Assembly: GCA_043228905.1 (NCBI GenBank)
Contig: JBHGNT010000001.1
Span: 31,310,001 to 31,374,000, forward strand
Length of the DNA: 64,000 nt
Direction: 5' to 3'
Origin: Azolla caroliniana
Taxonomy: Eukaryota > Plantae > Polypodiophyta
Below the pieces are notes generated by a model, which was given only the letters and a program-made list of their open reading frames with translations, had not been told where the DNA came from and made no database searches. This document shows positions 1-60,000 of this stretch, piece by piece. How positions within the stretch are numbered: position 1 is the stretch's first letter; each line of letters starts with the position of its first letter. A program made the position numbers and the translations under genes.

Positions 1-3000
1 ATGCAATCTTTACTTGTTTTCTATAATAGTAGACTCAACATACATGTATCACAAAGGTTCATTTAATGTAGAGAACTTTTCCTCAACCGTTGTCATGGAT
101 GGAAACAACACTATTTACGATGCACTTTTCATTTTTTTCTTCTCTCTTTTCTCTGCATGTATTCCCTTTTACTTTGATTTGTTGCTGATTTGGCGCCCAT
201 TACTAGTGCTGTCATTGTTTTTTGTCTTGTAGTCAATGTCCTTCAATTGTTTTTCCATCTCCTTCACATTGTTCTTGTAACGTCGTTGCACAACCGTGTG
301 ATTGTTTCGTGCATATAACTAGTATTTTCTATAAAACAAAACATTAGAAATGCATCCTCTTCCCTATATATTTCACAATATCACAATATCATAGATGAAT
401 ATTTAGACCGGACAAAAGGTCACCATCAAATATGATACAACATGAGCATCAAATTGAATTTGTTTGTTGATCAGTTGTTATGGAATGACCACTTTAACTA
501 TATGACCCATTGTCGACATTACGGATCTCATTTGTGTGATCATCACTTTTGTTGTAATTGATGCATCTCTCTTTCACTTTTGTACTCTCAAGTCATGTGA
601 AGCAAAAGACATTTAAACTATGATTGACAAACTAGTGGTTGGCAATAGTGCTTCCCCTATAAATGTTGTCACATGCATACACTACTAGATCATAAGTCTC
701 TGTACATTCGGCTAGGCCAATTTGCGATACAATCTAGAGACATGCCATTTCTTGCTACGAAACAGCCTTTAGTGTGTTTTCCGAGGATTGAAAGGAAAAG
801 GTCTAGGGTTGCTTTCAAGTTCGTCCGAGATAAAAAAAGAGAAGTTATTTTACAAATTTTAGTGTAAAAACTAGCAATCATGATTGTGAGGAATTATGGA
901 TGCTATGACTTTTTTCACTATCGATCACAATATTGTATTGTAGACCCACTCAGATGGTTTGATGGATTAATCACCTATGGTAGAACTCCTCTACAACTAG
1001 TTGCCAACGTTATATCAACTCCCTATCATATGCATCCATGTGTTCCTTGCTAACAAATCATTAGCTATTGAGTAGATTAAGTCATGTTCATATGCTTGTG
1101 CTAACACATCCACATGTAATGCCCAAATGTTTTATTTATACATAATGTTTTAGGTGATGTTAACAAGTGAATGACCAAAGGTTTCCCTACTTCAAAGTTG
1201 CATGTATCTCCCTTGTATATCTCATTGGTTCTCTCTAGAGTAAGTTCACTAGTAAGTTCCATGATTACCTTAAAGGTTAAGGGACATATTTATCAATGCT
1301 TTGTTTTGATGTAATGAACACCATCCTTCAAGATCCCCAACTTATAATAAGCATAAGCATGCACATTATGTGAATTTTGGCTTAGCGTGCAACCCACACC
1401 CCCAACCAAACAAAGAGCAACATCCTTATGCTCAAAGAAAATCCTCATCCTTATGCAACCCACTTGCCCTAGTTGGACACATGTATGTGTAGAAGAAGAG
1501 AAAAAACATTTCCCTGGATTCTATAATTTGATGTGTAGAGTGACAACAAGTCAATGTGCAAAATGATGAAAATTTAAAGCATGTATTTTAAAAAAACTAT
1601 GCTTTTGCTTTTTTCTAAATGGATTTTCTTGACCAATGACACTTTCCTAGACATCTTATTCTTGACTCTTAGACCAATGCTTTTAATTCTCGAGTTCATG
1701 GCACACGTCTTCACATAGCGAATTGGTACCATAAAACTAGTAAGGCCATGCAATTCCAGACATGAAAGGGTACTCTTTCACTTGGTGAATTTACACCCAA
1801 GCAATGTGCCCCCCTTCAATGAATTTGTACAAAAACTAGGGAAAGACAAATTTAGTTGAATCCGTCACTTAATTTAAAATATTGAAATTTTGCTTAGAGA
1901 ACAAGTTTGAGTTTGACAAAATTAAACTCTCTATAACTATGTAGAGCTAAGAGTAGTACCATGATGGGATTTAATGAATTTGGAAACTATATGGAGGAGA
2001 TATAAGCAAACTACTTGATAGAAGTATCCTAAATCCCACCTAAATTTCCTCACTCTATATGCACTCAACAATTGATACTACATGAGTGGGTATGACTATC
2101 AAATAGAACGACATGTAATTCCTTGCACAAGTAAATAAACCTAAAAAATGGGGAAGAAACAAAAATAATAATACAAGAATGTTTGAATAACATTCACATT
2201 CGTTTTCCAACGTAGGAAAACGAATGTTATGCTAGACGAACATGAATTTTACGTACTCCTTGTATAGGAGGTTTTTTGCATCTTATGGTTTGTTATGAGT
2301 TTTCATTCTCGGTTTAACCAATCATTTTGGGTTTAGGGTCATAAAGGTGGGAAATATGTTTCATGCAAAATCTCAAAGTTATTTAGAATTTGTTGATATG
2401 TGATACTTTTGACACACTCCACTTAAATTATAAGTTGATTTGGCAAAAGTTGTAGATTACATCATTGATGTAGGGTCCCTTACCTATATGGATAGAAGAA
2501 GAGCAACCATGTTTGGACTGATGTTCATCGGGTAGTATCAACTTTTTAAGCAACTACTAATACTTAATCTTTAAGGCTGAACAAGAATGGCATGTGACAG
2601 ATTTTAGAGTAGAAATTGTTTTGTCTATAAAGAGGCCAAATTTGACCTATATAATAAATCGACATAACATCTTGGGACTCCTTCCAAGTTCCTACAATGA
2701 GGAGTTACTTCAAGAGTAAAAAAATCATTAAGAAGAGTAAACTAGGCTCGGCCCTCAAGGCTTCAAAGTGAAGAGCAATAATCCACTTTATGTGTACTTC
2801 AATGATGATTTCTTTCTTTCTTTTTTTCCACGGTAAAAACACGGTTTTCCGAGCAAAAACCAAGTAGTAATCCATTTTAGAATTTATTCATGGAGCCCTC
2901 ATTTCCGTTTTACCTTGAAACTACAATTTTCTGACTCTTTGAAACATTGTTATAATGAAAGAAATATGGGAAACTGGCTATAACTTTGGGATAAAAGAAA

Positions 3001-3968: not shown

Positions 3969-6144
3969 GTTTTTATAGAACCTCACATCCCTATTTCTCA
4001 CTTACCCTCCCACTCTATTTTCATTATGTGTGTGGAACAATCTATCTAGGTATGGGGGCGTCACCAAAACCTCCACAATGTACTTTGCATGGTCATTGAG
4101 GCATTCATAATCATTGTTGTTACTCATCCCTCTTGAACATATTTATCATTACGGATTGGATGGGTATAATTTCAATGCTCTGTGAAGAATGCCACGTCAA
4201 TACTAAAAATTACACTTGGCGTGTCATGAAAATGGTTAAGGTTGATGTGAATCATATACCCTCAACTAGACATCAAACTATTTCACAGAATGACTTCTTG
4301 TGGGCTCGAAATTGTTGCATCGAAAGTCTTCATGACAAAATAAATTGTTGCATAAGATTGTGAATGTTGCCACAAAAGATGACCTATCTTGAACCAAACT
4401 TTTTAGATTTATTGTGGATGACGTCAAACTCTCTTCAGTAATATAATTGATCCTTGGTAGAATCGTTGTACCCTTCCAATTGTGTATTTATAGATAGAAG
4501 TTTACATCCCCAATGATGATTCTTGGAAACTTTATAGGAACTTGGGAAGATGATTCATCATATTTGGCTTCACTCATGAATGACAACTTCTAAAAAGAAG
4601 ATGCATTCACCACTAATAAAATGTATTCCATAGGAATCTTGTTAACATGTATGCTACATTTTAGAACTGCCATTACAAAATGTTCCATATATTTAACATA
4701 TGCTAAGTATTGTACGTATTTGACAAGTATTTTATGTTTCCTAAAAGAGAAATATATAATTAATAATAATTAGACCCATAAATTTCTTTTGAGGTGGAAT
4801 GATTTTTTTGTTGAGTAAAGTTTTGGGCACAATTACTTCATTAGATGAAGTTTTTTGTGTGGTGCCTATATGAATTACAGAAATAAATCACTGAAAGTTA
4901 GAACAATTGCTAGATGATATGAACCAAAGAAGTATTTAACGTATCCTACATATTCTACGCATATTTTTAAAAAATGTAGAATACTTTAAAACTTCTTACC
5001 ATATGTATCGTAATATTTTACAACTAGGGCATTTAGAAGAAATCTAGATTATTGTTGTTAGCCCTTGGAATACCCCCCGATAAATATGGAATCAACCATT
5101 GTTATTTACTCTTATTCTAATGAATGCCTATCTTATTCTAAATGGTGCTATTAAAAGGTCTTGTGATATGGTTGTTACTCAAAATTTTATAACTAGTGGA
5201 AGGAGTTTCGTTTTTTGGAAAATAAAAAAATAAAAAATAAAAAATCTCCTCAAACTACAAGGGGTACAAATTACGTGATGAGGGTATAAATTGATATTCC
5301 TCATATGGCAAGGGTACATTCGATATCACCCCTATTACAAGGGGTGCTTATAAAAAAATCCTTCCAAATTTATATAATTCACAACATAGGTGGCATACAC
5401 ATCATACTTCTAAATTATAATATAGGTGGCATAACATTGCCCCGTTATCATTCATGTGCGTGTCGGTTACTTTACATGTAATGGCTCATTTTACGAATCT
5501 ACAAGGAGTTAGCATATGTTTTCAACAAAAAATTATGAGGGAATATTGTGTGTATGATATCTACCATCTTCCCAATAATCTAGTTATTTTAAATAGCAAT
5601 ACATTGGTTATTTTAAATAACAACACATCCTATAAAACCTTCTGTGTATGTATTTTAGCAAAATATTAAAGCATTTCTATATCAAAAGAGATATGATTTG
5701 GTAAATGTCTGTGAAGATTTCACTTATAACACACTTTCAATATGGGTACTTTTGGTATAGATTTGCCAACTTGTAACTAAGGTGTAGATCCCATATTGTC
5801 AAGAATGCATGCATATGAAGAATGGTCCAAAGCTCAAAAACATTGTAGGATGGGTTGACATTGATGAATTCGAACAGAGTTAAGATTATAGAAACTTCAA
5901 ATGTGAGCATTAGTCAATGCATAATATGGCCTACATTATAAATAACATAGTATTGCTACATAGCGTGCAATGGTTACACATATATCTTTACCCCGAATCC
6001 GAGGACTAGTCAATAATATAGCATACACGACATATCACATAATAGTGCTACATAACGTGCAATGGATATAGAATAGATCTTTATTATTTAAAACAAATGT
6101 GAAATGTGAAGGTCTTGGCATATGTGAAGGACAAGGGGACATTT

Positions 6145-14992: not shown

Positions 14993-15044
<52 letters not shown>

Positions 15045-18000
15045 TTAGCTTACCCTAGTGGTAAGTTGTAAGAATACCCATGAAAGGCCTTGGGTTCAAG
15101 GCTCGACTTTCACACCTCTATCACACCATACATATCTTCTATCTTCTTAATTTTGCAAGATGCTAATGGAATGACCTTCTGGTCTCTGCCAGACAACCTT
15201 ACCAACTGAACTACATTCCCTATTTCTGTGTCCGAATTACAAACATAGCCTGAAAGTTTATATGACGGATAACACGGTAGAAACTGCTAAAATTCTAGAA
15301 CCATGCATTGGCGTATGACTTCTAAAGCAAAATTCTATTCTAGGCTATACAATGTACATTCATTTTCTGTCTCTGAATAAAACATAAGAGGCAAAGTTCA
15401 GAAAGAAGGAAACATACCAGATCCTTGACACTGAAAATATCAGGTCCCCCCAAATCATAAGTTTTACCCATACTGGTGCCATCATCTTTTACAGCTGCCA
15501 CAATGGCTGCTGCTACATCCATCACATGAACTGCTTGCAATCTGATATAAATAGCAGAAATTGAATAAGTAGACGAGATTATCATTTAGTGATGAAGTCC
15601 AAGATACCTTCAAAGAGGCATGGATACATTTAATTACAATATATGAATCATCATAAATCTTTTTTCCTATAGTTGCAATCATTCTGTAGTCCCAAACAAG
15701 CAATCCAGCATCTATCCCAAAGCCTCCCCAACAAACACATCGACAGGAACAGCAATATCAGTGCAGAGAGTTATTACTTGAAGAATAGCAAGAGAAGTAG
15801 AGATGGGTCCGGTGGCAATGATGGAACAGAATGATTAATATAAACCTCCAGGATTAATAAAATGCTATTACATATTACAGATATGATCTTTATAATCAAA
15901 AGTAACAGGAATTTACCATCTACCTTCTTTAACTACTTTGCAAGTGAGCAAGTACAACCCTTTCAAATTAGTGCATATTACTGTATACAAAAACACATTT
16001 CACACAAAACACAATCCGTACATTTCATATGAAACCTGTACGAAAAATACGTTGATTTTGACATTAAAAAAATGTTTCTTTATTCTGAAAACAACGTTCT
16101 GAAGCTAATTTCCGAAATGACAGAGGGAAGAGACAGGTACTCACAAGTGTAGGGTCTCTCGTATTCAAGATATAATGCTGGAATTTTTTGAGGTACAACT
16201 AAAAAAATTTATTTTAAAAACACACTTTTTAATGTCAACTCTGACAGCTTTTTGAAGCAGGTTTCATATGGAATATGTATTTATATTATACTGTTTATGC
16301 CATCAGTGCATTTTTTGGTGTATCAAACTATTCTTCCTGAATAAATGTTGTTTCTAGTATAATAGCATTTGCATTAAAACAATGCAACTGGATAAATAAA
16401 TCAATCCAAATAGGCATTAATTATAAATCTAAAAAAATAAACTAACCAGAAAGTTCGCATTAGCATCTTATTCTCTTAAAGAACTTGTTCAAAACATGCC
16501 TTTTGCAAAATCTTAGATCAATAAATAAATCACCTTGTTTGACCATCACCGATTAGTGGGACAAATGGAAGATTCTTTGCTTGTTGTGCCCATATATTTA
16601 ATAAGCGATCTTCTGTTCCCACTAAGGGACCAGCTCTTAAGACTGTTGCCTGTACAATATGAAAATTAAAAGGCATAGAAATATTAACTATAACATTGTG
16701 GAAAATCAATCTAAATGTAACAGTTTAGCAACTACACTGGAATACTGAATATTAACAATTTGATATACCCCTGACACCTAGAACCTTGTATCCCAAAGGA
16801 TGCAAAACCCATTAAAATGTGGCACAGAGTAAGATTTATTCCTGCTTATGGAAACGATACACAGACTGGTTCTCTAATAATAGAAATGATACACAGACTA
16901 GTTATATGAATCATCAATGTAGCCATGCAATAGACGTATACAGCTTGGTATACCTGATATTTCTTGTTCATAGGATGAGCTATACGACAGCCACTTGTAA
17001 TTTGGCATGATAATATATTTTATATCCAGGATCATTTTGTGTCTTTCGATAGGTGGTAAATTTAGTTTTAAGAACAACATTATAAGATATTAACTTTTCT
17101 GGGCCAATCAATTGCAGTTATATGACTTCTGAAACGTGGAAAATATTAATCTTGGGTTCAGAGGCGATTCTAATTAATATTCCAGAAAAAGATTTTATGT
17201 AACATTACTGAAGAAATTCAGGAGCTAAGTTGCAAATCCTGGATGCAGAAAACAATTAATACAATAAAACATCCATTCAGAACCTAAAAATAGTGAACCT
17301 GTGGAAAATGTCGGAGGGCTATCTCATCAGCTATGGCTTTTGTACGGTACATCTTTGATGGTGATGTGATAGAAGCCCCTAGACAAGATGCTTGTACATA
17401 TCTAAGAATCCCACCATGTTGCTTTGACAACTACGTCATAAACCAAAAGTTCCACATCAGACAAATCATAACATAATGAGATATTAGAACTGATAACCCA
17501 TTATATATTAGCATACTCGAGAAATAGCTTCTGTAATTCCAATGTGAACATCATCAAAAGTGAAATTTCGAGTCTCAAACTCCCTTCCTACAAGGAGCAA
17601 GGCAAGTTATTAATATAATAAAAATTAAATTTGATGATGATGAACCACCAAGCTCATTGAATATGTTTCATGCCACACCAATGAGATTGATGACAACATT
17701 CGACTTTGCAATGGCCGACTTGATGGAGTTCTCATCTCGTGGATCGAATTTCATTGGAACAACCTGCATACTAACAGATGTTCAAAGTATGCTTACATTT
17801 GTAAGATTATAGTGTGCCAAAAATAGGAGCCCATAGCATTTCTAAATAGCAACAAACATTTTAATGCAAGTCAGGAAGTTCACATGCCTGTCCAAGATCT
17901 CCCATAAGCTTAAGATGTCGTGGTGAATCTTCTGATCCTCTGAATGGAACCATAACTTGAGATCCCATTTTTGCTGTTTTGACAAACATAAAATGAGATC

Positions 18001-21690: not shown

Positions 21691-24600
21691 CTTCCCCCCC
21701 TCCCTCTCTCCCCACTCACTCTCTCACTTTCTGGGAGTATGTAGAAGAAGAAATAAACAGATAGGCGAACGAAGACGAAGACGAAGCAGAAGAGGAAAAG
21801 AAGAGAAATTTTGGTCCTTCTCGGGAATTTGCGTAGGACGAGTTACAGTCCCCCCCCCCCCCCCCCTTTCCACGTAATTATGAAAATACCCCTCGCATTT
21901 TAACATTACCCTATACCCCCACGCACGAGCATGTTTTCAAGGGATTGAATCTCCCAATATGACAAAACCCAAGTTCGACCCACATTAGATTGGATCCCCA
22001 TGGATTTTCATTTATCTTCATATTGGAATGTACCCTAGAGATAAGTAGTCTTTTGTCGAGTGACCATGCAAGCATGCTATATTGGTGATCTTGCATTAGC
22101 CTATGCATATGCATATAATAATATGTCTATGGTGAAATGATAGCCTATTAGTTAAGGCTTAGATATGTATAATGGTGGTCATGGGTTTATCTTCGCCTAT
22201 TATCTCTTTGTGATGTCATGACATGATTACTGTTATTTTGTATATATGCTCGTAACATTATCCCTTTCCTTCAATGATGTGTTCCATAAGTCGCAATGCG
22301 CAATTTGAGACTTGGCTTATTGAGATATCGGTTATGAAATTTAGTAATAAGTCTCGTGTCATTAATGAGATTCTTAACAAGTTCATACGTTTCAGACCTA
22401 TTTGTATAGCCTAACCAATCAATCAAGCAATATAAATTGTATAAACAACCTTGGAGTCTAAAATGGTTGTCATCTCATATTTCGGACCATCAATAAACTA
22501 ACAACATGTGGGGCAACACAAGGGAATCAATTCAAAGCATAAGGTTCGAAAGTGATACATGGAACACTGTATGAAGATGCATAAGGGGTGGGAGATTAAG
22601 ACAAAACTCAACTTCGTTGATTTTGTTAGAGATTACATGTACCAAGACTTTGATTATCCAACTTGCTATAGTGCAGCTTGAAGGTTTTTACGTTACGTTA
22701 GAAGACCCACGCAATTCTGGACTCAAAACTTAGGTGCTTCTTGTGATGAGTTGAATGAATCTTCAAGATTGATTGTAAGTGGTAGGGAAAGGAGAATGCA
22801 ACTATTGGAATCAGAAAAATTCGTTTTTGGATATTCAAGCACCATCCAACGAGGATGACATCCCATGATGACAAAGAAGGGATTACACCTAGAAGAAAAA
22901 TGAACCCAACTATAGCAAACAACCGTTGCAATTTGCAACAAAAAAACAACCCAAACATCCAGTCAATGGTTGATGAAACGGTGAATATATTGCTTCAATA
23001 TTTGATTGATATGCTTGGCTTGATCATCAATATCTATACGGTAGCTTCAAGAGAGTTTGTACACAATATAGAGGAGCTCAAGCAAATGTTCCCAGAATTT
23101 TGAGATGAATTATGGGCCTCAATATTAATGACATAATTTGGCAAACCATGATCCATGAATACTTATCACATAATTGTATATGTTGTCTATTGACTATTGA
23201 TAGTCTTTGTGCATGCAATGAAATGTGCTACCTTAATGAATAGATCCACTATAGTGAGAATGGCATCAAAACATTTGAAAGACGGGATATCAATTGTTGA
23301 GAATCAAACTCAACTTCCCGAGTGTGGGAACACACTTTAGGAACACCCAAGTGTGTGAACATCCCACCTCCCTTGTATCTCCCTTGTATCATAACTAATG
23401 TGTTATAGAAGTTAAGTCCTATAACACATATTTAGTAGGTAGTTAAGTCTCAACCTCTTTTATAAGAGATGGTTGTACCAAGAGAATATAGAGAGAAGGT
23501 AAACTATATAAGCACCTTCTCCCTCCCTTTGTAAAATGTTGGTTCATTCTTGTTTTTATTGTTTTTTCAAAACAAAATATCCTTCCAAAACATTAGCTAC
23601 AACACTATGCTTTCGGTAGAGATTGTGCAACTATTGAAGCCAATCTATACCTCAACTCCTCCATCCATCACAAAATCTAATTTCATTTCAGTATGTACAA
23701 CCAAATCTCCCATGCAGCCACATGCTTTCAACATACCAAAAAATGATAGGTAAGAGGAAGCCTTGCACTAGCATTTGAGGATAAATTTGTATAGCATCCT
23801 CATTCTTATCTTGCTCAGTATAGCCCAATAACATGGCAATCCCTCGTACCACATCTTCAACCAGCAATAATTCATCAAAAAGCTCTTGGGCTTTAATTAT
23901 TGCTCAACAAATGCAAGCATAGTGACGGTTGATGTCAAATCGAAGGGTTTGAATAATCCAAAATGAATGCTTAAATAATCTTGGAATGCATTCTTGTTCT
24001 TGTTAATACAATTTTTCTTGTTTTCTGTATAACTCTCTCCGTTTCTATGTCTCTCTCGACTACACACACACACATATCTCTTATGCTGCACATCAATAAT
24101 AAAATCCTTTTGCATATATTGTGGCTTTTGAGAAAAACCAAAAAGTCAAAGAACAATTGTTTTGGTTGTGGAAACATAATAAATGACTTGTTTACCGAGA
24201 TTCATGTGCAAAGGCTTCTTACATTAGTGTGCATTAGTTGTCGCGTTGTACCACAATCACCAAACTAGATATTGTAATTGTGTTGTGTGTAGAGCTACCT
24301 TGGAAGCATGCTTTATGAATAAACAAGAGGAAGACTACTCAAGACATTCAACACCCGAAAAAACAACAATGGGCGGTCACAACAACCTCATAATGACAAA
24401 GTGGGATTTAACTTAAATACGAACATCCACTCCTCATGATGATGAAGTGGGGTGGATCTCGAATATGAGCTGATCACAGTATGGTGTTCAACTTTGCAAT
24501 TGAATATGAAGGGGTAAATTGCTTCAACGCTACCTTGCAAATCGTGTAATGTTGTTAAAACAACAAAGGCAACCACCGAAGGTTTTTTCCACAAAGGAAA

Positions 24601-35170: not shown

Positions 35171-37976
35171 GATTGAGACTCCCGCCCAACGAGAAGCTTA
35201 GCAACTGCCAAAATCCATGCCTCCCCCCCTCCTTGCAAATATTGACATATTTTGTCCATGTGGCCCCAAGCTCATTGATCACAAAAAAAAATAATCTTTG
35301 GCCATGAAACCCGGAATTTCATGTAAGATGTGCCCACAATTAAAACCCTATAGGTCGCAATAAAGGTAGCATCCGCAACTTGTTGCTTACCAAACAGGGC
35401 GGCTGTCTCTCATTGAATGAAACCTACACAAGCCTAGTCGATACTAGCAAGAGTTACTTTTGTCAACTAGCCATCTATGCATTTGCATTATGTGAATTCA
35501 TTTGGTGGTTTTTATTTATTATTGTTTAACTTGGGTGACACACTGTTAGACATATTATTCACGTTGAGTTTGTCATCAGTAGCTACTAACAAGTTGATAT
35601 TATACAGGTTTTGGGATGGTATGGACTTTTAGGACAATGTTTAGACTTATTACACTAATGCTACTCGATTTTGTAGTTGATGACTTGTTTGAGATTGTTA
35701 ATACCATCACATGGGTATGTGGGCACTCACACACAACCCCCCGCCACCTTTTGAAGTGGGAGAAGGAATCAAACACCCTTTAACTTTACTTGCTAAAGAG
35801 CCAACCTGGCAAAAGGCGCTCCACGACTAAATGGAAATTGTTTATGTCAAGTGTTCCGGTATTCGATAAAAAGGTGCCATTGAGCAACACCACTATCTCA
35901 CATGCTAGTGCCCGAAATCCAAATTGGTTTTGTTCATTTGTCAATGCTTGTGTTATTTTGGCATCACAAATAGTAAAGAAATGCATGGAGATAATTGATT
36001 GAGCAATGCCCCCACCCTACAAACTCCATCATTGAGAGTTTTGTATATCTGCATAGTAGTAATGCATTTAATGAACAATAACTCATGCTAGGGTCATCAA
36101 GCTAAAAAAGAGTTGGATTAAGTTTCACATAAAGGATAATTATTTACGCTTTTTTAATTCTACAATAAACAGTAATATAAGTGTGTAATACGTACGTAGA
36201 TTTTTGTTTTTGTGCCCCGAGCGAGTTCAAGACTTCTTGTATGATTATGGAGCGAAATTGTAGCCACTCTAAAGAGCCAATATGATGACCTCAAGGGCGG
36301 AGCCGATGGAATCGAAAGACAACGAATAGCCTTCATCCAACAATGGTCGTCCTCTCCCTTTCTTGAGTCAGTGGGCATCCACATAAGATGGAACTATTGT
36401 GGCTCTAGAGGGATTTGTACATAATAGTCTCATTTGTAAAATTTTATAACTAATGGAAGGAGTTTTCTTTTCGGGAAAAAAAGAAGAAGACTTCTTGTAT
36501 GATGAGATTGAACCATGATGGATTAAATATTTTTAATGGATACACATTTTTTTATCCAACACTAAATACTCCATATTTGAAACTTCATGCTCCTTAAGTC
36601 ATTTTTTAGATGTTAAATGCCATAGGTTTACTTAATTTGTTGTACGCATAATTCATTCTTATTTACTTAATTTGTTGTACACATAGAAGTTCCATGAAAT
36701 CATGGTGCATGAAATTATGTTGTTATTGATATATTGTGATGGAAAAATATGCATATCTTTGACTTGAAAACCAAAAGAAGTTTGACATGCCAACATACAC
36801 GCTTCGTAATCAACCTCGAGTAAGCTCAAAGATATTTGGCCCTTGATGTTAGTGACTAGAATTTGACAACTAATGACCTTGCAAATATGTTTATGTGAAA
36901 CCATATGCAAATAGAAAATCAAGGTCTACATAAACACCTTGAAACATGACTACTTCACTCCATAAAAGCGTACTGATTGTAATTCAATAAAAAGCATGGC
37001 CATTTTTTCCCTTACGTGTTTGATCATTTCTTCATAAAAAAATCAAATATGTTTCTAGATAAATTAAAATCTTGTGGTTAAGAAATGAATTTGTCAACAA
37101 TGTTATCATGCACATATGATATAAGAAAAGGACACACATTAGAGGAATTCACGACCATTGACCATAACTTCCTCACTTGCATATTATATGCCCCACAACT
37201 CACGTAAGACCAGATAGAGTACACAAGAGGTAGGAGATGCCCCCACACCATTTACACAAAAAATGACATCCTCTTCACAATATTGTAAGAGAAAGTAAGC
37301 AATCCAAGCTACAGTTGAGATTCCTCGATTGCAACAACACAACCAAGTTGAATCATCTAGTGGAACTTGGGACATGTTAGAATAACCAACTTCAACTTCT
37401 CACTCTTTTATCTTTATTTACTATTTGTTAAATTCTTGATTGTTGTTGAAGCAAACAAGTTGTTTGTTTTGGTCTCATAAGTCACATTTGCTCTATAGCA
37501 ATGTTAATATGAATCGTCTTCTTTTTTTGGGTACACATTAAAGCTAGTAAGTTTAGATGCAAATGCAACACTACTAAAACTAAGTGAATCAGTGATGGAT
37601 TGTCTCATGATGGATGGGAAGGGTGTACAGTGTACAAAAATGCTGACCTAGGAAAATACAAGAACTTGGAAATTGCCACAAGAGCAATCCACATGTAAGG
37701 TAAAGGAAGATTTCTTGAGAAAAGTGATGTAATGATTTGAAAACTAGTCATGTATGTAATCATATGATACACGATGCTCCAAAAGAGCATGACATATAAA
37801 GCAAGGCATTTATGAATGCGCATCCATACATGCATGTCACATGGTCGCCATCACTCATCGACATTTGCTAACAAAGAATGTTGATATTCGCAACATGAGC
37901 CTAACTACAAGAGAATTCTCATGAAGAATGACAAGGATTACAATAAATCGAAAACATATACATATTGGTTGCTTCA

Positions 37977-38360: not shown

Positions 38361-39080
38361 CATCCCACACCATTGGTAAATCGCAAGACTGCCGCGTTCG
38401 CGTCTTGATATATGTGTTTGCATTTATTATAAAATCCATTGGACAAGAAAATGGGTTTCCGAAGTTTATTTGCATACCATTACGTGGTTCTAAAAACCTT
38501 GGGAGAAGTACCCTTACAAGTTTCTAAAAAAAATGCATCTACACACTTAGACCCTTACAAGTCCTAAAAAATGGCTTGACCATTTTAGTTTCCACCCTAG
38601 AAGGCTTAGAAACAATATATGCTTTGTGCTAGTACCCTTACGAGTTTCTAAAATATCAATCATATATCGTAACCAACATGAGGCTCTAAAATATCAAATC
38701 TACACTAGAAACCTCACGACGTTCGAAAATATCAAAATATGCACCGTTAGAAGTTTATGAAGATGAAATGTCTGCACCCTTAGGAGGTTTTAAATGACTT
38801 TGAAATAGTACGTTGAGTTTCCAAAGTACTAGTACCATTTTTCATTTGGAGTTTCTAGAATATTAAAGTTTGAACTCTTGTTTATTTAATATAGAAAATA
38901 CCATCAGGTCAAGCATGAACACTAAGTTTTGAGCTAGTTGTTAACATCTCATTCTTGCAAAATGCACTATTTCTTTCAATGTTGATTGCAATCGTAGACT
39001 GTAGTTGCTCTATTGCTCTCTACAACCTCAAGTAGTATACATGTTGAATACAATTTAGTTCGTTCTCTCTCTCTCTCTCT

Positions 39081-39278
39081 TAAGTACCTTACCCTAGTGG
39101 TAAGTTGTTAACACTACAAGCATTGTGTCGTGGGTTCGAAACCCAATCTCCTCACCTCTCTATTATATACTTCATTTACTCTTAATTCACTAAACGCCAC
39201 TGTGGAATGTCGGGGTTGAACCCATGACCACTTGGTCTCCATTGGGCAACCTTACCAACTGAGCTACATCCATGTGGG
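39081..39278. mobile_element. tRNA-derived double-headed SINE-like element, copy 2 (more intact)
   Basis: + head: TACCCTAGTGG (39090-39100) and GGTTCGAAACC (39133-39143). - head: TAGCTCAGTTGG (39266-39255) and GGTTCAACCCC (39222-39212). Flanked on both sides by (CT)n at 39064-39080 and 39279-39292. Confidence 0.75.
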
Positions 39279-40030
39279 CTCTCTCTCTCTCTTTCACGCA
39301 CACACACACACATCAAGAGGATAAATGTAGGTTATTGAGACGACATACCCTCCCCAATGAGTAGCATGCATTGAGCTATGAGGAGGAACCTTTATCATGA
39401 AGGACTATTAGTTAACTAATCATCTACAAAGATAAAGGTGTATCTTGACAATAACATGCAATGCACAAGATGTATACATCACATGTTGCTATATCTCATG
39501 GGAGTATCTATCCAACCTATATGATAAAAAGGGGTATGTCAATTGGCATTTAAGTGAAGGCACGTGAGCTTATAAATGGCAAGGGTATTCTTGCCATCAC
39601 TTAATTATGTGAGGATCCAACTCATAGACACTATAAGGAAGCATGAGGGGAAGGTTGCAGGAACATGATTTTTATGTAACCCTTAGTCTAATGAATGAAA
39701 TTTGTGTGTGGTTATTATCTATCTAGTTATAGTTAGTTAGTAATTAGGAGAGAGAAAGGTAGGTTATAATGCCTAGACCATAGGCATTTAACTACAACAA
39801 CCTGTTATTATCGACCTTGTTTTTGCCATTTCCCGTTAGAGTCACAATGAGCTTTGATAAGATCTTGTTGCTACAAGAAGTGGCATGGAATTGCATCTCA
39901 CATCTATTTGGGAAAGCCTGAACTATCACCATATCTTCTGACAAAACCATCTCCCTCTTTTGGGAAAAGCTTAATAGTGAGTAATGGTGCAAATTGGGCA
40001 TACTAAAATACATGAGTGGCCTATGTAATA

Positions 40031-40198: not shown

Positions 40199-41442
40199 GA
40201 GAGTAGAGTAACGATGAACTGATGGAGTTTGTCTCTAGGGGAGTAATGCAAGGTAAAGAATAAATATGGATCTAGTAGTTCTCTCTATTAGGGTTTAGGG
40301 TTTTGAAGTACATAGTACAACATTTTCAACATGATCTACTAGTTCTATATGTTAGATTTTATGGTACTATTTAAATACCAATACATTGAATATGTCCTCA
40401 TAAGCAATCAACACATGGAGATGATAAAATGCATTTGATTAGGGAATCTCATTTACCAAGATCACAAGCCAATGCTTACCCAATTTAAGAGCAGGTGTCA
40501 CTTACGAGTACAATAGAGATGCCGAACATAAGAAAATAAATGAGTTGTAGAAAAATTTACAAGAGGATGCAATTTTCGTCTTTTGGATCACGAAAGGAAG
40601 CACATGAATTTCCCACACAATGATTGGTTTGACGACAAATGGAGGAAGACTTGTCCATATACAAACTCTCATGATGAACAAGCACATATATAAGGAAAAA
40701 GAGAATGAAATTTCTTATGCAATAAACCCATGAGACACATGAAAGGGGTTAACAGGAAGAAGGAAGAAAACACGTGTATATGGGCAAAGAGCATATTCTT
40801 AGACGCATGCAAACATTGTATGCTCAATTAACGACAAATCTAAAGGATGAAAACTTTATGTAAAACAGCAAGTTAACTTTTCAAGAAGCGAAGGCAATCC
40901 AATATTTTTTCTTGTTCTTATCTTTAATCGTAATCTAACATGCTTTCAAGATATTATAGCACATTTTGGTGTTTTTAATTTCCATTGTTTATTCCAGCAA
41001 ACCTTTTATGTAGGAAATCATCCAAATTTGCATTCATTTTCAAGATTAAACAACATACCATTTTCCATTTTCAACAAAATTTTCGCATCAACCAAAATCT
41101 GGCAAAGAAAACACTTTTCTGCAAATTTAAAGCTACAACAAGCTTGGAAAGTAATTAGGGTTGAAAGGTGTGAAATGGTTCTTGACCACCATCGAGTCAC
41201 AATCCCCCCTAAAGAATGTTTTCTTAATTATATTTTTGTCTGTTTTTTCGAACTTGTTGATTGGTTCCTAGTGATCCAAACTTTGCTTTCTTATTTTTCA
41301 TGATCACTATTCCTCTTTTCAAACTTAGCCTGTGTTAATAGAATAAAAATGTTATTACTTTTCAACTTCTAAAACCAAATATAGCCTTAATCCTCCAAAG
41401 CCAAGAGTAGGTAAAAGCATGCCGCGAAGAGCCAGTCCAAGA

Positions 41443-41898
41443 GCGCACGCACCGGAAACACTACAGTGGATAAAAAGAAAAGCAAAGAGTATCGGTTGGA
41501 CACTGCGATGGTTGATGAAACACGACAAAAAAAGCGCACGCACGGGAAACACTACAGTGGATAAAAAGAAAAGCAAAGAGTATCGGTTGGACACTGCGAT
41601 GGTTGATGAAACACGACAAAAAAAGCGCACGCACCGGAAACACTACAGTGGATAAAAAGAAAAGCAAAGAGTATCGGTTGGACACTGCGATGGTTGATGA
41701 AACACGACAAAAAAAGCGCACGCACCGGAAACACTACAGTGGATAAAAAGAAAAGCAAAGAGTATCGGTTGGACACTGCGATGGTTGATGAAACACAACA
41801 AAAAAAGCGCACGCACCGGAAACACTACAGTGGATAAAAAGAAAAGCAAAGAGTATCGGTTGGATGCTGCGATGGTTGATGAAACACGACAAAAAAAG
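41443..41898. repeat. 91-bp minisatellite, ~5 near-identical copies
   Basis: Unit AGCGCACGCACCGGAAACACTACAGTGGATAAAAAGAAAAGCAAAGAGTATCGGTTGGACACTGCGATGGTTGATGAAACACGACAAAAAA. The ORF track shows identical peptides offset by 91 nt. Confidence 0.95.
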
Positions 41899-50769: not shown

Positions 50770-51150
50770 AAATGGGGTTTGTTTCAGTTTTGTTGGGGAT
50801 AAGGGCCGTGTGAGTTTTGTTGTTCCTCCGTGTTGTATCTATTGACCCTATTGTGGATTCGAGTTGAACTTTGTTGTATTTTGTTTCCTAACTAATGCGA
50901 AGTAGTGTTTTTTTGGAGAAAAAAAGAACTCATGAGAAAATAGAATTTGTTTTGGTCCACAAGAAGCTAACCATTAGTTGCTATTACAACTTCAAGCATT
51001 GTGAACACATTACTTTGAAAATTGGAAGTCCAACTTGGCGATGTTATCAATTTTCAACCCTTCAATTTTGGAAAACGGCTTTAATAAATATGACTGTTCA
51101 TTTAGTTAATAAGAGCCATAATGAAAACCCCACTTTTCCAAAAATCATAT
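50770..51150. repeat. Dispersed repeat, probably a TE terminus; second copy at ~57490-57790
   Basis: GTGTGAGTTTTGT...GAACTT..TGTATTT.GTTT.CTAACTAATG.GAAGTAGTGTTTTTT..GGA(G)AAAAAA at ~50808-50925 and ~57542-57632, followed by ATGAAAACC.CAC.TTTCCAA in both. Confidence 0.65.
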
Positions 51151-57063: not shown

Positions 57064-60000
57064 TGGTTTGGTAGCACTATTAAAGGTTAAAGCCTTTCAC
57101 ACAGAAGAGCTAAATTTGTAGCTAGAGGTTTAGTGTGTTGTTCCATGAGTTTGTTTTGCAAAGTAATTTTGATGGCTGGATCAACCGATTTAATTGAGCC
57201 AGGAAATGCAATGTCTCTTTGTCGGCAATGAAAGATTAAATATGGGAAGTTGATTCATAAGACCTTGAAACTCATGTCTAATTTCACAAACCGATTTGAA
57301 TGTTGTTGTTTTTCTTCCAATAACACTGAGTTGAATGGTAATTGGTTTTCCCATAGAAGAACATAACAATTCAGCGTCAGGGCCTAAATGGAACTACCAA
57401 GCACTGAGATGGTTGTTTTCGTCATTGGCTTCCATTAGTGGACAGAAGATGTAATTATGTGGTTACCATGTAAAAAGAGTTAGCGGGATACTTTTGTTGT
57501 AAATAGTAGGGTGGGGATTATGCTTAGTTTTGTGTGGAATAGTGTGAGTTTTGTAACTTGTTGATTATGGCTGAACTTGATGTATTTCGTTTGCTAACTA
57601 ATGGGAAGTAGTGTTTTTTCTGGAAAAAAAAACAATGTCCATTTATTAGTCCAAATAAGAATTCACAATCATCGTAATCGTCTTGAAATCTTTGTTTGCC
57701 TTACATTACAATATCTTAAAACATATTTCAAATAAATGACTAATTAAAACTCTCATATTCCATGAAAACCACACCTTTCCAACCTACTAAACCCTTGTGA
57801 CGGAATAAGTTATAGCCATTTCCAAAATGGAGTGAAAACATTGACATTTTATCGACACAACACCAAGTGCTATATGATCCTTAAAGGGTTGTCCTATCCT
57901 CAAGTGTAGTATGTATATGAATACTTTAATTTAATGGCCCCTCAATCCTCAATGCCCCCACCATAGTAATGTAGGGTATTGAAAATCCAAAAGATAAAAG
58001 TTTTCAAAGGTAATCACTATTGTACTTCATTGTATCAAAAACTCAACTCAGATGCATGGTTTCAACTTTCAAGTGTTAAACACATCCTCATTTGATATGG
58101 ATCATACAGGTTGTGTAGAAAGTCCTATAGATTTGCTTGTTTTCAAACCACGATATCCCCAACTTGGTTCACACGTGTTTCGGTCTTCCAATTGAAACTA
58201 TAGGTTCTATGCTTCCAACATTGCCTTGAAAATGTTGAGAATAATGTGGATTGTATGGAATGCTGTTGAATTGCCTCCAATCAATGATTGTACCATAGAT
58301 GGCGACATCACAATGAATAATCTCATGATGATGATGATGATGCACAATAATATGATGTGAAACACAACTTTTTCAAATAAAATTGATGTTGTACTTAAGG
58401 CTTTTCGAATCAACTTGATGTTGTGCATAATATTATTATATATTAAAATTTTCCACCACAACCGATGTAATGCATCGGTTTTTTTTGTTCCCTTTATTTA
58501 CTATAAATTTCATGAGAATGTGTTGTGTTTTTGTTTCCCGAAGGGCCACCATTTACGCAAATGGTTCCGCTTAAAACAAAAGATCTAATGTAATGCATGA
58601 AAATACGGTCTCTAGGGATCCATAACCACTATTTTTGTACAAACATCATTTCTATTGTTGATGGGTTAGACTTTATAGACTTCCAAAATCTACACCAATA
58701 CATATTGATGTTCACCAATTCATTATTGAGATTTAGAAAATTGTACCATTCCTCTTCCGGGTCGACTTTTACTTGCATGGTGCCTAAATGCACTAACTAC
58801 ATAGGAGATTAATCCATTCCATGGAATCTTCTAAGCATCTTGTTGGAAATTTCCACCCATGTAAATGCAAAATTGTTGAATTTAGCAAATACATATATAC
58901 GTTGGGGAGTGAATCTACATATACATATGTCAACTTGTGAAATTGTAACATTCACATCTTTGATTAACTTACAACCTCCCCACCCTGAACTATATAAAGG
59001 AAATATTGTTGAAATCTCACGCGAAGGTAAAATGTTAGTATCCAAATTTGAAAACATATGTGTTGTAATTATATTGAAATGTTGAGACATTGACACTGGC
59101 CTTTAATTTGAATCAATGTTACATGAAACAATAATACGTTGATTTTTATAATTGTATAGAAAGTTATCTTTGATGGAGTGATTATAGTACAAACTATTCA
59201 TTCACTAGAATTCCATCTCCTCTTAATGCATTTAATTTGATCTATTGCCGGTAGATCCCTCTTCAAAACAATGGATTCACTTACTTTATTACATTATCCA
59301 TATACCCCAAAATTATTTTGAAGCCTTGATTTTAAATCAATATCTATATGCTTCAAATGCAATTTATACATAACTATAATATTGTGGTGACCTTTTAGTG
59401 CAAGTGCATGCCTTCATGTGCATTTCACAATATAAATATCCAAATAAAAGAAGAAATTAGCCGATACCAAAGAAGTAACTTTGTGACTCTCACAAGAAAA
59501 GAAATAAAACCATGGAAAAGACATTTCCATGTTTTAAACCGTGCTTATATTATACTCTTTAAAGGGAACATAGATAGTCACAGAAAAGGGATCATGTAAG
59601 TTGTGCTAGTCGGAGGGATGGGTTACCGAAGCTGGTGTTATAGTAAATTGTGATAATAAAATACTCAAAAGGGACATTATTCTAGAACAATTCTTCCTAT
59701 AAGCACCACACAATTTATTTATTCATTATATATGTGAAGCTAGATTTTCACGAAATTTTTATTCATAAAAACATATTCATGCCAAAAAATATATGTAAAT
59801 TCATGTACTTTGATCCATTGAAAAAGAAAGGTCTTTGTATGCACGTTGGTCAAAGTGAGCTTGGTATGTCGACTATAGAAATACAGTATAGCGTTCCCTG
59901 GTAATTACATTGAAGCGCAGAATCGGTTGAAGATTACGGGATGTTCTTCTCCCCTGAGTGAGTGAGGGAAGCACAACCACTTACATGGAGAGAGACTAAA

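Follow-up and report, generated by a model that had tools for sequence, protein, structure and literature searches.

Two tRNA-like modules that face each other within one short unit can be read as a pair of convergent Pol III promoters or as parts of a retroposon with a single sense strand, and a unit of about 200 bp in Azolla caroliniana raises this question. A preliminary description had taken the unit for a candidate new repeat family consisting of two convergent Pol III heads embedded in (CT)n microsatellites. Following analysis of the window (the whole 64-kb stretch of DNA in which the unit lies) and of related public contigs, we consider it probable that the family is a tRNA-like-headed SINE of ~210 bp plus tail, with the window minus strand as its sense strand, that spreads by the mechanism proposed below as a whole.

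Both described modules were recovered, the plus-strand one (A-like box, B box in a hairpin, ~43-nt spacing) at 39090-39145 and the minus-strand one with the boxes listed below, and (CT)n was indeed present on both sides, at 39064-39081 and 39280-39293. The homologue at 15041, described as abutting (TC)n, aligned over its full length and adjoins (TC)22. The window therefore holds two members of one ~210-bp family in the same orientation, copy 1 at 39080-39279 and copy 2 at 15041-15227, with the following features:

39280-39294, minus strand: flank 5′ of copy 1, with a short sense-strand (GA)n; the same AAGAGAG... run stands at both element ends
39272-39279, minus strand: 5′ leader, GCCCACAT in copy 1 and GCCCAGAT in the family consensus, conserved among full-length copies
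39202-39271, minus strand: tRNA-like head, with the A box at 39266-39255 and the B box at 39222-39212, 44 nt apart
39151-39201, minus strand: AT-rich body with an internal AGAGAGG run, where many truncated copies join (GA)n
39088-39150, minus strand: 3′ module, which is the second tRNA-like "head" of the preliminary description when read on the plus strand
39131-39145: hairpin 1 of the 3′ module
39088-39104: hairpin 2 of the 3′ module, a palindromic 17-mer holding the A-box-like motif
39090-39100 and 39133-39143: plus-strand boxes in the 3′ module, A-like and B (GGTTCGAAACC), the latter within the hairpin at 39131-39145
39080-39087, minus strand: A-rich tail remnant, degenerate in copy 1; family consensus CTAATTACGATAAAAA
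39064-39079, minus strand: (GA)n on the sense strand, 3′ of the copy 1 tail, second arm of a putative target-site duplication
15041-15227, minus strand: copy 2, which belongs to an older subfamily, has 79.7% identity to the consensus and has lost the head B box by deletion
14997-15040, minus strand: (GA)22 directly after the copy 2 tail, which is (TC)22 on the plus strand

The (GA)n at 39280-39294 is probably one arm of a target-site duplication of ~15 nt. In copy 1 the box starts are 43-44 nt apart in both modules, the AT-rich stretch between the two box pairs is ~55 nt long, and the plus-strand B box, GGTTCGAAACC, matches the consensus perfectly. Copy 2 has lost ~20 nt, including the minus-strand B box. 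Each of the terminal motifs occurs exactly twice in the 64-kb window, against 0.12 and 0.03 occurrences expected from shuffled sequence, and a count of 2 was reached in 0 of 100 shuffles. The window is otherwise gene-rich plant DNA, encoding PROPPIN/WD40, aldo-keto reductase and dirigent proteins according to a Pfam scan of its open-reading frames.

Public metagenome contigs were scanned for exact matches to a 17-mer of the element, and at least 120 stretches were found. Among the matches listed, 101 were short contigs of ~2x coverage from one ENA assembly series and 19 were chance matches. The contigs of the series share other repeats with the window, indicating that they derive from the host, either the same plant or a close relative of it, and the copies span several metagenome assemblies of related or identical host, with some loci being a single site that was assembled more than once, from separate samples (L001/L091 and L062/L084, for instance, with identical flanks). 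These copies were fished with a 3′-end motif, so that copies without that end are under-sampled; by-catch copies in the same contigs mostly keep the 3′ end, and a few are without it. A single consensus of 203 nt was derived from 68 aligned copies, to which an 8-nt leader and a tail are added, and mapping it back recovered at least 104 copies. Copy 1 spans consensus positions 1-197 at 92.3% identity, with a median of 91.8% for the 34 near-full copies, while copy 2 groups with L040 and L086 in an older subfamily. The diagnostic changes of this subfamily extend over head, body and tail, indicating that the unit propagated as a whole. The copies are short (<1 kb), interspersed among unrelated flanks and non-tandem, in line with the SINEBase criterion. 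Two proposals of the preliminary description were borne out in this way, namely that the unit belongs to a genuine multi-copy family, with about 100 or more copies in one metagenome series beyond the two in the window, and that its halves move together.

The relation between the two modules was then taken from their alignment. The reverse complement of the 3′ module aligned collinearly with the head, over the D-loop region and then the T-arm, with a score of 31, compared to 15.5 ± 2.8 for shuffled sequences, of which 0 of 500 reached 31. Both modules are therefore tRNA-like, and the second is inverted and not tandem, as had been proposed. They may go back to the same source tRNA or have only generic tRNA features in common; the T-arm region of the head presumably resembles that of plant tRNA-Lys. 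The same alignment corrects the statement that the unit has no terminal inverted repeats, since its two ends are inverted relatives. A Twin-type dimeric tRNA SINE was also considered and was rejected, as the second unit aligns with the head only as a reverse complement. The Twin SINE of Culex pipiens, described by Feschotte et al. in 2001, reportedly carries two tRNA-related regions head-to-tail on one strand. The Azolla family resembles Twin and other dimeric tRNA SINEs in having two tRNA-related regions in one short retroposon, but differs from Twin in that its second region lies on the opposite strand, at the 3′ end. When both modules were checked as tRNAs, neither was called: ARAGORN found no tRNA in the window, in either module, and Rfam gave no tRNA match at E ≤ 10 for either module (searched with the 216 bases alone). 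Comparison with three tRNAs of one kind gave a best overlap of 17-22 nt (the SINEBase threshold is at least 60% over at least 60 nt).

Read on the minus strand, the element consists of a leader, the tRNA-like head, the body, the two-hairpin 3′ module and a constant short stretch, followed by an A-run and usually by (GA)n. The A-run after the constant stretch is 0 to ~12 nt long, and long A-runs on this strand also terminate a related family that has the 3′ module. The absence of a poly(A) tail noted in the preliminary description is thus a property of copy 1, in which the tail is degenerate; the consensus ends in a variable A-run before (GA)n. With the window minus strand as sense, the 3′ end is precise in nearly every copy, and the 5′ ends are ragged, with starts scattered from position 1 to ~170 and many of them abutting ordinary sequence. 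Target-site duplications, which had been called for as a check, were clear in non-microsatellite flanks of L022 (14 nt), L019 (14-16 nt) and L034 (11 nt). They bracket the element exactly, from just before the GCCCAGAT leader to just after the A-rich tail. Duplications of 12-17 nt made up of the GA tract itself were seen for copy 1, L107 and L065. Automated scoring of duplications over all copies came out only slightly above a null with swapped flanks, owing to the mutual similarity of GA flanks and the imprecision of BLAST start points, and individual clear cases were used instead.

The element therefore bears the hallmarks of retroposition: its 3′ end is precise and its tail variable, its 5′ end is often truncated and its duplications differ in length. 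The precise tailed 3′ end, the ragged 5′ end and the duplications together form the signature of a Pol III-type SINE that moves by target-primed reverse transcription and argue against both a DNA transposon and a plus-strand sense. A MITE-like DNA transposon, with the tRNA-like ends serving as imperfect terminal inverted repeats, would fit the MITE-like size and the inverted relationship of the ends, but the duplications vary between 11 and 16 nt, the variable A-rich tail is confined to one end, truncation is one-sided and the orientation to (GA)n is strict. We rejected this reading on the one-end tail, the one-sided truncation and the 11-16-nt duplications and regard it as extremely improbable, the inverted ends notwithstanding.

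An unrelated retroposon-like repeat of ~240 bp lies on the plus strand of the window at 36246-36487. Its tail is A-rich, its 16-bp target-site duplication is exact (36230-36245 and 36488-36503), and copies at 84-86% identity are present in L030, L100 and L118. This tail and duplication indicate that such retroposition machinery is at work in the genome. L1-type machinery would fit both this second repeat and the SINE, with its duplications of 14-16 nt and its A-rich tails.

The distribution of TTTT, the Pol III termination signal considered here, differs between the strands. In the consensus there is none on the sense strand, and an antisense one stands directly after the plus-strand module; among the 34 near-full copies, TTTT was present on the sense strand in 8 and on the antisense strand in 25. 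This bears on the proposal that the unit holds two active convergent Pol III promoters, whose overlapping transcripts would form dsRNA/siRNA or whose paired B boxes would bind TFIIIC as an insulator. In its favour, each module retains an A-like and a B-like box at a tRNA-like distance, the plus-strand B box is perfect and the 3′ module is the best-conserved block across subfamilies; in copy 1, moreover, the TTTT after the plus-strand module is mutated, leaving no terminator on either strand, and in this single copy convergent read-through may occur. Against this, the TTTT right after the module in the consensus and in 25 of the 34 copies would stop a plus-strand transcript at tRNA size, after ~80 nt and short of the head, and the tails, truncations and duplications indicate propagation from one strand. 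A and B boxes by themselves are an indication and not proof under the SINEBase definitions (PMC3531059). Judged from these features, active convergent promoters appear very unlikely, and the convergent pair as a working design gives way to a one-directional retroposon.

The 3′ module most likely serves, as far as its sequence can tell, as a 3′ recognition or structural module and not as a convergent promoter. Besides its conservation, it recurs behind unrelated upstream sequence in at least two other repeats. In L003 (~1510-1700, minus strand) and L023 (near the contig end, ~790-1028), ~110 nt of unrelated sequence in common stands directly upstream of a SINE-type 3′ module; this is explained either by a third family that uses the module or by duplication of the locus. 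Tandem units of ~150 nt with a SINE-type tRNA-like module were found in L066 (3249-3480) and also in L018, L028, L031, L035 and L060, at 76-82% identity; TTTT follows each unit on the tRNA-like strand, and T-runs stand between units. L066 has 35x coverage, compared to ~2x elsewhere, and carries a Plant_SRP (7SL) RNA gene at 1-300. Tandem units of this type are a possible source of the SINE 3′ module.

Hairpin 1 is kept at the same place in the older subfamily with a shifted pairing register. Predicted folds were no more stable than those of shuffled sequences, with z = -0.3 for the whole RNA (a head-to-tail panhandle in the minimum-energy fold), -1.1 for the opposite strand and values between 0 and -1 for the 3′ modules, and our structural claim is therefore limited to the two recurrent hairpins. 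The recurrence of the module also suggests another origin, in which it was copied from the 3′ end of a stringent-type LINE or Penelope-like element that recognises its hairpins, and the endonuclease of that element sets the GA preference. This is compatible with a SINE and would replace the mechanism that we propose for it. Its occurrence in at least three repeat families with different 5′ parts, its status as the most conserved block and the retention of the hairpin through a different pairing register speak for such a copy, and microsatellite-specific LINEs and Penelope-like elements are known (PMC4494074, PMC8557442). The fold energies are no better than shuffles, however, the variable A-rich tails resemble those of relaxed poly(A)-dependent systems, and neither the window nor 237 kb of related contigs holds an autonomous carrier. 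We consider this origin a minor possibility.

Given the (CT)n noted on both sides of copy 1, the flanks of the family were tested for (GA)≥3 or (TC)≥3 within 40 nt on the sense strand, for which the background is 2.5% of 40-nt windows. (GA)≥3 was present in 53 of 97 3′ flanks (55%) and in 43 of 71 5′ flanks (61%), while (TC)≥3 was found in 0 of 97 and 0 of 71, respectively. The microsatellite preference suggested from two copies is thus upheld across the family and is strictly polar. A LINE family has been called target-specific when one sequence type makes up >20% of its flanks (PMC4494074), a level that the single repeat type found here far exceeds. A GA run of 7-45 nt ended within 20 nt of the 5′ junction in 35 of 68 copies, and none of these runs was the tail of an upstream SINE. 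The 5′ truncation points that border on GA are many and varied, and in one cluster of copies the junction with GA lies at the internal AGAGAGG, as microhomology joining would predict. Since GA runs stand on the 5′ side at these various truncation points, tail slippage alone does not account for the tract, which was at least in part the target. The presence of GA 5′ of an element was statistically independent of its presence 3′ (counts 11/16/22/21), so that insertion into the middle of a long tract does not explain everything. Insertion at tract edges, as in the L034 and L107 duplications, together with GA carried by the RNA after the A-run, would explain the lack of correlation.

Head-to-tail SINE pairs occur occasionally, at shared (GA)n tracts. 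In L105, L077, L044, L078, L065, L082, L115 and L008, copies often stand head-to-tail with only the tail and (GA)n between them, an arrangement expected if the GA tail of one copy is the landing site of the next; template switching is an alternative.

A partner LINE sharing the ends of the unit, which the preliminary description had suggested looking for, was not found: no LINE or other autonomous element with the SINE 3′ end is present in the window or in 237 kb of related contigs, and the Pfam scan of the window open-reading frames returned plant genes only and no reverse transcriptase. Long open-reading frames of the contigs gave Pfam matches to a copia element, a gag-like protein and one reverse-transcriptase element with a weak RVT_1 match. 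This last element occupies 146-8692 of L116 (minus strand) as a partial tandem, in which the copies are separated by a 48-nt TC/GA tract at 4760-4807, and ~1-2230 of L054. Its own sense 3′ end runs into (TC)n, which in each of the two contigs doubles as the GA tail of a SINE copy in antisense orientation, so that the two elements stand tail-to-tail. The reverse-transcriptase element was not taken as the SINE driver, because its 3′ end does not resemble the SINE and it is oriented the opposite way to the repeat.

The reverse-transcriptase element carries a DK-type motif and YIDD, and its nearest Atlas clusters are DUF8422/HTH_animal/RVT_1 proteins from rotifers and chordates. A PDB sequence search with its protein gave no match, and no GIY-YIG domain was seen in it. 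The Atlas neighbours, the motifs, the tandem layout and the microsatellite bias point to a Penelope-like element rather than an RTE-type LINE, which we regard as a lead. Penelope-like elements with microsatellite insertion bias and partial tandems have been described (PMC8557442), and the element in L116 and L054 resembles them in its partial tandems, DK-type motif and microsatellite association. This likeness concerns the neighbour of the SINE, which has the opposite repeat polarity and no sequence in common with it.

An alternative is that the plus strand is the sense strand, with the plus module as the true head and an RNA ending in (UC)n that is mobilised by this (TC)n-tailed element; internal priming on the CUCUCU stretch would then produce the copies without the far end. 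In full-length copies (TC)n does come after the plus-strand 3′ end, many shortened copies stop exactly at the internal CT run beside (TC)n, and the reverse-transcriptase element has (TC)n at its sense 3′ end and adjoins SINE copies in two contigs. On the other hand, in L022 and L019 the duplication directly follows the minus-sense A-rich run and there is no tail at the plus-sense 3′ end, the variable A/T run would be placed at a 5′ end, and TTTT lies inside the element on the plus strand. Shortened copies also stop at many positions without a CT run, and the SINE has no similarity to the 3′ end of its supposed driver. We find a plus-strand sense very unlikely.

For the minus-strand SINE that we favour, the following mechanism is proposed. 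The element begins ~12 nt before the minus-strand A box, and Pol III would start there, ~12 nt upstream of the A box of the head, and read through the body and the 3′ module. With no sense TTTT, the transcript would extend into the A-rich and (GA)n sequence. This RNA would then be the template for a LINE-type reverse transcriptase, and its target-primed reverse transcription would produce 14-16-bp duplications. The primer would be the pyrimidine strand of the nicked target, annealed to the purine-rich tail of the RNA, and such annealing would account for the position of the copies, which lie within (GA)n tracts or on their borders and invariably have GA on the sense strand. A (GA)n would in this way be regenerated downstream of every insertion. 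An endonuclease preference could replace tail annealing in selecting the site.

A further reading joins both views of the inverted module. From its A box, B box and TTTT, each copy might also be a complete, separately terminated antisense tRNA-like Pol III unit that acts at the same time as a handle for a microsatellite-homing retroelement, a combination that we think rather unlikely. If true, it would have spread thousands of TFIIIC/Pol III sites next to (GA)n in gene-rich DNA, and the inverted module would let one LINE or Penelope-like element recognise at least three non-autonomous families. Ferns would then possess a SINE system that homes to microsatellites in a strand-specific manner and whose antisense tRNA module has two uses.

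To our knowledge, SINEs are poorly described outside seed plants and animals, and target-specific SINEs are rare. A search confined to published papers found, among those covered, no described SINE with an inverted tRNA-like 3′ module and strand-specific GA association, no paper containing the motifs of the element and nothing relevant on fern SINEs. tRNA-derived plant SINEs consist of a head, a body and a simple-repeat tail (SINEBase, PMC3531059). The Azolla family is like them in its length of ~200 bp, 5′ head with A and B boxes, body, variable tail, 5′ truncation and LINE-type duplications, and unlike them in its inverted tRNA-like 3′ region and its (GA)n sites of fixed polarity. Among non-LTR elements, Kibi inserts at (TC)n, Koshi at (TTC)n and the crocodilian Tx1 families at (TTCC)n or (TTTC)n (PMC4494074). 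These elements and the Azolla SINE alike insert into purine/pyrimidine microsatellites in a fixed orientation, but the former are autonomous LINEs whose endonuclease is held responsible, whereas the SINE is non-autonomous. Carnivore tRNA-derived SINEs are reported to be intimately associated with microsatellites (PMC1634856). They and the tRNA-like-headed Azolla family are alike in their physical linkage to microsatellites, and the repeat of the Azolla family also lies 5′ of truncated copies and is thus at least partly a target. The family is real and somewhat unusual, microsatellite homing itself being already known for LINEs and Penelope-like elements.

Its specificity for one oriented strand of a microsatellite makes the family a clean natural test of whether sites are picked by the RNA tail or by the enzyme, and it ties microsatellite distribution to retroposon activity. 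The SINE and the (TC)n-tailed reverse-transcriptase element use the same tracts with opposite polarity. The family is relevant to the annotation of very large fern genomes and to marker work with GA/CT microsatellites. Motif-based calls of "Pol III genes" need care in view of the inverted tRNA-like tail, since the same 60 nt can be taken for a promoter from one strand and for a retroposon 3′ module from the other.

Other repeats were seen in the window. Dispersed repeats at 23295-23555, 22412-22741, 57463-57632 and 50842-50928 have 68-82% identity with sequences in L106, L118, L039, L005 and L030. A 91-bp tandem repeat at 41442-41898 comprises 5 copies of 98% identity, and a telomere-like TTAGGGT x2.3 lies ~1.1 kb upstream of it, at 40288-40303.
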